From: Salpingoeca rosetta
Lineage: Eukaryota > Protista > Choanoflagellata
Length of the DNA: 34,889 nt
Direction of reading: 5' to 3'
Assembly (NCBI GenBank): GCA_033442325.1
Contig: JAWQFM010000003.1
Coordinates: 607,552-642,440 of the forward strand
The notes beneath the pieces were generated by a model. It saw only the letters and a list, made by a program, of their open reading frames with translations, was not told the origin of the DNA and made no database searches. Shown one piece after another: positions 5,266 to 8,200 of this stretch. The position numbers and the translations under genes were made by a program. Numbering within the stretch: the stretch's first letter is position 1; the number at the start of each line of letters is the position of its first letter.

Positions 5266-8200
5266 TTAACAACGTGTTTCCTCATTTCCTGCATTACCAT
5301 TGTGGTGTGCAGAGCCAACCGCATCCAACGCAGCGTGTTGTTGTTGTTGTTGTTGTTGTTGTTGTTGTAGTTGTTGTTGTTGTTGTTGTTGCTGTTGTTG
5401 TTGTTGTTGTTGTTGTTGTTGCTGTTGTTGTTGTTGTTGCTGTTGTTGTTGTTGTTGCTGTTGTTGTTGTTGTTGCTGTTGTTGTTGCTGTTGTTGTTGT
5501 TTGTCATTGGGCTGCTGATCGTCATGTGCTCGCGTCACACCAACAACTTCAATCCCACCGCCATAATCGTAGCCGTCCTCATCCCCATCCCCATCGTCAT
5601 CGTCATCGACACTCGTGCCGTCACCGCCAGCAAGTGCAGGCATCCTGTGTACACGTCCGCGTTGGCGCACATCCCTCGACTGCCGATCGCCCACGCCCGA
5701 CGACGATAGCGACGACGGCGCCATATCCGCCACGTTCAGGGCGCGGCCACCACCAGCTGTGTCGTTGTTGCTGCTGTTGGTGTTGTTGTTGTCGTCGTTG
5801 CGGTTGGTGTTGGTCGTGCCCGTATCCATGGCGGATGGGGAGCGGGACAGCAGCAGCAGAGCGCTCCCGTCAATGCTGTGCGAGCGCGAATGGCGGCGTG
5901 GGGTCGTCCGTTTCCTGTCCACAATGCACACACACACACATGGAGGGTGAGGGAAGTGTATATGTGCGTCTGTGCGTTTGTGCGCGTCCGTGTGTGTGTG
6001 TGTGTGTGTGTGTGTGTGTGTGTGTGTGTGTGTGTGTGTGTGTGTGTGTGTGTGTGTGTGTGCGTGTGTGTCTGTGTGTGTCTGTGTGCGTGTGCGTATT
6101 GGATGCAGGGGGCAGAAGGCAGCAGCAATTTGGCACGTCTTACCTCTGCAAGAAGTACATTCAGCATGACAGTGCATCCACAACAGAGCATCCTTCCTCG
6201 AACCACCTCATGTGTGTTTGCATCTCACCCGCCGTAAAAACGACACGTGTCACGGCTTAGCTCCAAATCGGTGATTTTCACCAGCGCGCCCTGTCGACGC
6301 CTGGGTTTTGAGGCGCAGCCAGCACAGGTGAGGGGAGACGGGGACGGGATGAACATGCGCAATGTGCAACGCACACGTGCCTGAAATCGTTGTGCAACAG
6401 CACCACACATACACACATACATACATACACATACACACACATGCACATACATACACACACACACAAATACAATCACACACAGAACACTCCCTACGTGTTG
6501 ACACCTGATGATGTAGCGACGCAGCTCCTTCACCTCCCGTACGAGGTGCGGATATGACGCCAGCTGCTGCCGCCGCGTGCTCACGACCGTGCGTAGGTGT
6601 GCTGGCTCAAGCTGCAGCAGGCCAGGGTTGTGGGGGCCCGTTCCCCACCCGCACGTGCCCGCGCGGCGAAAATCCGGAACGAAGTCGTCCAACCCTGAGG
6701 CGATGCATGGGAGGGGATGCGTGAGCGGTGAGCGGGGACGTGTTGTAGTTGACGTGTCGTATCGAGTGCACATGGGAGAGAACCGCGAGAGGGAGTTGCG
6801 ACATGGATGCGTGTGTGAGCACGCATGACCAAGCTCAAGTGTATGTGAGGTACAGAGAAACAGAGAGAGGGAGACAGACAGACAGACAGACAAAAAACCA
6901 CACAAACAACCAAACACACGCACACGCACAGAGGGACCGAGAGAGACGAGCAGCCGCAGCAAAGCGTGGTGGCGTGCGACCTGCTCACCCATTGTTTTGA
7001 GCCACAGCAGCACATCGCGGTTTGTCCACTTGCTGACGCTCTCCTGGCACACGAGGAAGTTGCAGCTCTTGATGTCGCAATGCACAAGGCCTGCATGGGC
7101 ATGTTGCGTGTGTTGGGAAAGGGAGGGTGTTGAAAATGGGGCACAGATGACAAAAACAAACACACACACAGCCACACACACACACACACACACACACACA
7201 CACACACACACACACACACACACACACACACACACACACACACACACACACACACACACACACACATACACACACACGGACACACACACGGACACACATG
7301 TGCACACAGACGATTACCAAGGCGATGAAGGCAGGCGACGCTGCGACAGCAGTCGATGGCCATGTTGAGGCGCACGTCCCAGTCGGCAAGCTGCTTATCC
7401 CGCCGCTGCATCCCAAACAGCTCAAGCAGATTGCCTACGCAAACACACGCACACATACACACATGTAAACAGCCGCAGACAGCCGCAGGCAGCCGCAGGC
7501 AGCCGTAGGCAGATGTGAAAGAGTGAATTCTTGCATGTGTGTATGAACGGAGGAGTGATCGCTTGCAGTTGAAGTCACCATCCATCATCACCATCATCAT
7601 CACCACCATCACCACCATCACCACCGTCACCATCACCACCACCATCACCACGACCTTCCACCACCCATCACCACCACCTGGCCAAAGACACCAAACCTGA
7701 GCAGAGTTCCATGACGGAGGCAATTGCCGGTGGAGCGACGCACACGCCCTCGCCTTGCACGACATTTGGGTGGCGAATGGTGCACAGGAGGCTGTTTTCC
7801 AGGCAGAAGTTGCGAATGGTGTCCTTCTCCAGCTGTATGCAATACAGCATCTTGATTGCAACGTCCTTGCCCTCGTACACGCCACGGTACACGCGGCCCG
7901 TTCCGCCCGCGCCCAGCAGCCGCCGCTTCAGCACCTCCTCTGGCGCAATGTTGTCTTCCAGCTTCTGGAACTTGAGGTTTGCCATGTCGATCATTGGGCA
8001 CATGTCCCCAACCACGTCCATGTATCTGCCGAGCGCACTTGCGGCAACATCGTCCAGCTGGTCGCCTTGCATCATGGGCAGCAGCGGGCACTCCTCGTCA
8101 TCCTCATCACCGCCACCGCCACCACCACCTCCTCCTTTTCCCGTGGCAAGCGACTCGCGGCTACTGCTGGTGGCCCTTGTGCTGCCCCGGAGCGTGCTCT

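Follow-up and report, generated by a model that had tools for sequence, protein, structure and literature searches.

Eph receptors, ZAK/MLTK (MAP3K20), Ste11, ASK3 and Dictyostelium Samk each carry a SAM domain and a protein kinase in one polypeptide, and in all of them the SAM domain lies outside the kinase fold, at its N- or C-terminal side. Both kinases and SAM domains have been studied intensively, and to our knowledge the many proteins that combine a kinase with a SAM domain always hold the two side by side. Kinase domains can also be broken by long insertions that the fold tolerates, as in PDGFR/VEGFR/KIT and CDC7, where the inserts lie in the alphaD-alphaE or activation-segment region and are largely disordered docking segments. 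A further group, the GPCR-kinase fusions, has an N-terminal 7TM region followed by a cytosolic TKL-type kinase according to the searched text of two studies (PMC5784254, PMC12716839); there, GPCR-TKL proteins are reported only from oomycetes and amoebozoans (PMC5784254), and GPCR-TKL/K proteins only from acanthoecid choanoflagellates, with 11 GPCR-TKs also described (PMC12716839). The terms ‘SAM domain’ and ‘sterile alpha’ are absent from the main text of PMC12716839, and the searched text of PMC5784254 on GPCR-kinase fusions contains no mention of a SAM domain. Full-text literature searches for a SAM domain inside a split kinase domain returned nothing relevant, in line with the original prediction, for which no described protein was known to have such a nested arrangement.

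Here we analysed a 34,889-nucleotide stretch of the choanoflagellate Salpingoeca rosetta (hereafter the window; contig C3, positions 607552-642440, of a 55.4-Mb assembly), which holds on its minus strand a gene that shares the order of the described fusions, an N-terminal 7TM region and then a TKL-type kinase, and that is present in one copy in the S. rosetta genome. Joining 9068-7697, 7434-7318, 7090-6989, 6694-6505 and 6300-6225 on the minus strand gives a 618-aa protein that matches exactly, on translation, the public model annotated as a TKL protein kinase of S. rosetta (P0001; EGD81561.1 / XP_004996765.1 / F2U1Q9), and all four introns have GT..AG borders. The exons and spliced reading proposed earlier from the DNA letters agree exactly with this translation. 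The protein begins with seven hydrophobic helices, as read from its sequence, and continues through a low-complexity linker into the protein kinase domain. Exon A (7697-9068, minus) encodes the start codon, the 7TM region (P0001 residues ~40-290), the linker and the kinase N-lobe as far as VMELCSG, including the glycine loop (386-391) and the VAIK lysine, Lys406; it is supported by exact translation and by the Pfam kinase match. Exon B (7318-7434, minus), supported by translation and RNA, encodes kinase helices alphaD-alphaE (NLLELF...ACLHRLG). Exon C (6989-7090, minus) carries HCDIKSCN (7082-7059), strand beta7 (FLV), the start of the insert and, from 7049, SAM helix 1. A phase-1 GT..AG intron (6695-6988, minus), supported by spliced reads in four runs, lies within the SAM region and splits the codon of Gly531, and exon D (6505-6694, minus) encodes SAM helices 2-5 (P0001 531-594). 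A second GT..AG intron (6301-6504, minus), with the joint 6299|6504 seen in four runs, separates the SAM exon from the beta8 exon, exon E (6229-6300, minus), which holds the end of the insert (to 6282), beta8, the DLE motif with Asp605 (6269-6267, minus) and the start of the activation segment.

We found that the kinase domain of this protein is interrupted between the catalytic loop with strand beta7 and strand beta8, where 90 residues (P0001 511-600; 6282-7049, minus, introns counted) separate HCDIKSCNFLV (500-510) from VKITDLE (601-607), the SAM fold itself occupying ~514-597. The distance from Asn507 to Asp605 is 98 residues, compared with 20 in an ordinary single-exon TKL kinase of S. rosetta (L007); similarly, in CTR1, the closest match among solved kinases, a stretch of 20 residues corresponds to one of 109 in the relative P0011. 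The kinase matches form two stretches that flank the insert, as the original prediction, which had also counted ~90 residues between NFLV and the DFG-equivalent, had anticipated. In Pfam, the Pkinase and PK_Tyr_Ser-Thr matches cover P0001 residues 382-517 (E ~1e-17), and the closest solved kinases for both halves are of the TKL group (CTR1, Roco4, MLK1/4, TAK1, TNNI3K, DLK and ZAK), with E-values of 3e-35 to 1e-30 for the PDB matches to CTR1, Roco4 and MLK over both halves. Instead of the turn that joins beta7 to beta8, there is a complete SAM-fold domain of ~85 residues, whereas CTR1/EDR1-type Raf-like MAP3Ks, Roco4 and MLK, the best sequence matches for both halves, lack a 7TM region, keep a canonical DFG and have a beta7-beta8 turn of the normal short length. 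Another member of the TKL group is ZAK, whose kinase and SAM domain were both among the matches; in ZAK, as in Eph receptors, Ste11, ASK3 and Samk, the SAM domain is outside the kinase fold, unlike the S. rosetta SAM between beta7 and beta8. The long inserts of PDGFR/VEGFR/KIT and CDC7 are at other positions and, unlike the S. rosetta SAM, are not an independently folding known domain.

To follow the splicing of the insert, RNA from three studies, in the form of two raw runs (X21, X22) and two assembled runs (X4, X6), was mapped on window positions 6190-7140. The junction 6989/6694 (joint 6693|6988) was crossed by three reads in X21, five reads in X22 and one contig each in X4 and X6, and the junction 6505/6300 (joint 6299|6504) by four reads in X21, six in X22 and the same two contigs, so that single contigs of 2939 nt (X4) and 2385 nt (X6) span both. 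These two junctions had been singled out beforehand for an RNA-seq check, and both are present in all four runs. Loose ends at 7091 in the four runs continue into 7319 and upward, which is exon B. No further joint was found in 6190-7140 among the four runs, including any that would bring NFLV directly to the VKITDLE exon, and the intron bins have a depth of zero; the depth over exon 6505-6694 equals that of the flanking exons. Given this equal depth and the lack of a skipping joint, the insert is constitutive in the samples mapped. The first mate lies on the plus strand in all read pairs, which in usual stranded libraries points to minus-strand RNA and so agrees with the gene model.

At its 3′ end, the public model XP_004996765.1 is truncated. 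It runs through a donor at 6229 into a TGA at 6227-6225, whereas the mRNA splices onward at 6229 into sequence encoding GLSFDPPDVPS, the contigs extend 497 and 1000 nt past exon E, and RNA depth is zero in bins 6190-6221. Neither the window nor the readable genome contains the 30-nt loose end that follows 6229, or sub-strings of it; tblastn with C-lobes of relatives as queries gave no match in the window or in the flank to its left, and a protein search of the S. rosetta genome returned no orthologous C-lobe, only other kinases at no more than 44% identity. The 8.4 kb directly left of the window (G000:C3:599148-607551) reads N. Either the 3′ exons lie in this N stretch, on the far side of the opposite-strand gene (2361-4819), or the assembly lacks them. 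Near 5330, one minus-strand frame contains TLRWM; no kinase sequence follows it, and the motif was treated as a chance occurrence. The gene at 2361-4819 (plus strand) is a multi-exon gene placed tail-to-tail with the kinase gene, and its open frames resemble, on ORF reading, an ATP-grasp-type succinyl-CoA ligase beta subunit. Repeats at 5266-6183 (minus), 5990-6120 and 7150-7300 comprise long microsatellites of (CA)n and (GT)n as well as a run of CAG/CAA, the last giving an open frame with ~70 Gln (Asn in another frame).

The identity of the insert was examined by several sequence searches. In Pfam, SAM_2 matched the insert with 17.7 bits, below its gathering threshold of 20.5 (E 0.004, profile positions 2-29 of 66), and SAM_1 with 14.4 bits against a cut-off of 23; the matches are limited to the first 26-29 profile positions, corresponding to helices 1-2. 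The HMMER result foreseen for the insert, a SAM_1/SAM_2 match, was hence obtained, yet below threshold and over helices 1-2 alone. Inserts of relatives likewise gave partial, sub-threshold matches (19.8 and 18.0 bits in L016, with a SAM_1 E-value of 0.001, and ~13 bits in P0011). With exon 6505-6694 alone there was no Pfam match even at E 10, and the SAM signal therefore needs helix 1 from the preceding exon. As the Pfam SAM match is partial and below threshold, the SAM call rests on profile and fold evidence. When the 90-residue insert was the sole query of a phmmer search over 1.84 billion representative proteins, seven matched, namely the query, two family members, two tandem-SAM proteins, one liprin-like protein and P0012; the SAM proteins scored E ~1e-4 over the whole library, with the liprin-like alignment spanning query positions 3-79. 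P0012, a low-complexity repeat protein matching query positions 37-56 only, was taken as spurious. A profile built from the family members’ inserts alone (alignment A2) and searched against all PDB chain sequences placed the SAM domain of liprin-beta-1 first (E 1.4e-6), and ~19 of 22 matches were SAM domains, with further matches to those of Shank2, DGK-delta (profile positions 5-82 aligned to chain positions 7-76), SARM1/TIR-1, neurabin, SMSr, ARAP3 and CNK1. Word-indexed protein searches with P0001 498-618 and P0011 100-260 brought back only the queries, and an Atlas feature search with the insert region gave nothing beyond generic kinase clusters.

The fold was examined by structure prediction. 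The AlphaFold2 model of the S. rosetta insert was made with alignment A2, and because this alignment is family-only, no SAM sequence could bias it. The model (mean pLDDT 88, pTM 0.78) is predicted to be a five-helix bundle with helices at 10-19, 23-32, ~46-48, 51-57 and 68-86. With Foldseek, the best 50 PDB matches were all SAM domains (TM 0.6-0.77 by target, E of at least 0.018). In an independent comparison with 48,161 representative chains (VIA-align), the best 50 were all SAM/PNT, with rmsd values of 1.4-1.7 A where 68-76 residues were aligned in chains 69-87 residues long; the SAM domain of HYP had the best Z (11.1, rmsd 1.7 A, 73/75 residues), and that of SAMD1 followed a similar pattern (Z 10.7, rmsd 1.4 A, 68/69 residues). 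The expected SAM matches were returned by phmmer, the family profile, Foldseek and VIA-align, and the expected five-helix fold by AlphaFold2. We conclude from these sequence profiles and the predicted fold that the insert should be regarded as a true, divergent SAM domain.

Relatives of the protein encoded by the first exon were found at 38-59% identity in Logan and ENA assemblies, and the insert is present in every relative that reaches this part of the gene: L004/L005 from a genome of 37% G+C, L003 (59% G+C), the 459-aa JGI protein P0011 with a complete kinase domain, and L016 from a metagenome scan. Its presence in these four other genes indicates that it is not a chance feature. A further candidate from the metagenome scan, L017, is an ordinary bacterial kinase without the insert and was rejected. 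In a three-way alignment, Trp-Thr, Asp, Leu-Trp-Leu, Gly-Leu and Phe are invariant in helices 1-2, and so is Gly-Leu-Leu ahead of helix 4. S. rosetta, L004 and L003 share the position of the phase-1 intron, which interrupts a Gly codon after helix 1; L016 lacks an intron at this position. Since the insert and the shared phase-1 intron extend across relatives, the arrangement is ancestral to the family. Downstream of the kinase, the L003 sequence (4293-9367) holds Dpy-30, TerD-domain and transketolase genes with few introns. These comparisons, together with the RNA, confirm that a SAM domain nested in the kinase core is real, expressed and conserved.

Of the residues that catalysis requires, the S. 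rosetta protein retains the glycine loop, Lys406, the catalytic Asp502, Lys504, Asn507 and the metal-binding Asp605. In L003, L004 and P0011 the C-lobe is complete, and its motifs include DxxSxG, RP and one of APE type. The DFG is not canonical: it reads DLE (6261-6269, minus, in S. rosetta) in each of the four genes whose sequence reaches it (S. rosetta, L004, L003 and P0011), with Asp retained, Phe replaced by Leu and Gly by Glu. The Arg of HRD is replaced in five of five genes by Cys, Lys or Met (HCD/HKD/HMD), and DLE and a non-Arg HRD accompany the SAM insert in the four genes that show both. Non-RD kinases are commonly active. With the catalytic residues retained and a complete C-lobe in relatives, an active non-RD kinase is expected; we consider the kinase only probably active, given that DLE has Glu for Gly and that HCD stands for HRD. 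The presence of DLE rather than DFG throughout the family may reflect adaptation to the insert.

Taken together, we favor a joint reading, at a probability of roughly 70%, in which the gene encodes a 7TM protein with a CTR1/MLK-like TKL kinase that carries a constitutive, ancestral SAM domain between beta7 and beta8, the kinase probably being active and the SAM domain serving as an interaction module. Other explanations of the same observations have to be weighed against it. The insert could be intron sequence or a rare alternative exon, with the true mRNA joining NFLV nearly directly to the VKITDLE exon, and on sequence reading there is indeed a weak GT donor right after NFLV whose use would leave an in-frame, normal six-residue turn. 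A skipping isoform through this donor was rejected as being without read support, and raw reads as well as contigs from three studies back both junctions of the insert, exon depth equals that of its neighbors with no skipping joint in the four runs, and the insert’s protein sequence is conserved across genomes of 37 to 59% G+C; we therefore hold such an artefact to be extremely improbable. Somewhat less remote, although still very improbable, is that the helical insert merely resembles a SAM domain as a convergent small bundle or linker, without SAM ancestry or SAM-type binding. The partial, sub-threshold Pfam scores would agree with this, and middling structural scores come easily to small helical folds; however, searches using sequence only specifically pick out true SAM domains, and the structural matches extend over whole SAM domains at rmsd 1.4-1.7 A, with SAM/PNT making up the best 50 in two methods.

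A different alternative concerns what the kinase does, rather than what the insert is. It could be a pseudokinase scaffold that performs no phosphorylation, with the SAM domain doing nothing except assembling a signalling complex on the 7TM receptor. This would accord with a whole domain sitting in the kinase core, with the change of DFG to DLE in all members whose sequence reaches this motif and of HRD to HCD/HKD/HMD, and with the S. rosetta C-lobe not being found in the readable genome. However, the residues usually lost in pseudokinases are all retained here (glycine loop, Lys406, Asp502, Asn507 and Asp605), the C-lobe motifs given above are present in relatives, where this lobe is complete, and non-RD kinases are often active. 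We consider a pseudokinase scaffold unlikely.

The N-terminal region also appears to differ from that of described fusions. The 7TM region (P0001 30-300; exon A, minus) has no Pfam match, and in the ESM Atlas it resembles TPRA1/GPR175 (Tmemb_40) by features (0.91, 188/256 shared) and by structure (TM 0.68), with an oomycete GPCR-PIPK cluster as the second structural match. The GPCR-TKL/K proteins, as described in the main text of PMC12716839, are acanthoecid, whereas S. rosetta is a craspedid whose 7TM region looks TPRA1/Tmemb_40-like.

For the SAM domain, the most likely role would be that of a protein-protein interaction module, acting either by self-binding between receptors or by binding a SAM-bearing partner or substrate, and with an effect on kinase activity. 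SAM domains associate with one another head-to-tail or in heterodimers; those to which the insert is structurally closest (HYP/CNK, SAMD1, Scm, DGK-delta, SARM1 and Shank) are ones that we take to be of the SAM-binding kind. In kinases, the adenine pocket is floored by the beta7-beta8 hairpin, from which the chain passes directly to the metal-binding Asp. The SAM domain would thus be held near the active site, each end attached to one of the strands beneath the ATP pocket, with the second strand, beta8, running into the DFG-equivalent; through this attachment, SAM engagement could pass to the active site. The original prediction had likewise proposed that receptor oligomerisation could be coupled to the nucleotide-binding site. 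The AlphaFold2 model of kinase plus insert (P0011 1-362, shallow alignment of 16 rows) had a mean pLDDT of 57, too poor for SAM geometry. A bolder version, which we regard as doubtful, would make the nested SAM domain an allosteric switch worked through receptor clustering, for which kinases offer no known counterpart. Ligand-driven clustering of the 7TM receptors would lead their SAM domains to bind head-to-tail, each SAM domain, strung between beta7 and beta8, would pull at DLE and at the ATP-pocket floor, and the kinase might in this way be turned on or off without activation-loop phosphorylation.

The above findings mean that a kinase core tolerates a whole folded interaction domain at the beta7-beta8 turn, and they add a 7TM-kinase fusion from a craspedid choanoflagellate. 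If the interaction role of the SAM domain applies, the family would provide a natural case of a binding module mechanically wired to the strands of the ATP site. Expression of the gene in S. rosetta, a model choanoflagellate for which many RNA-seq runs are public, makes this idea testable.
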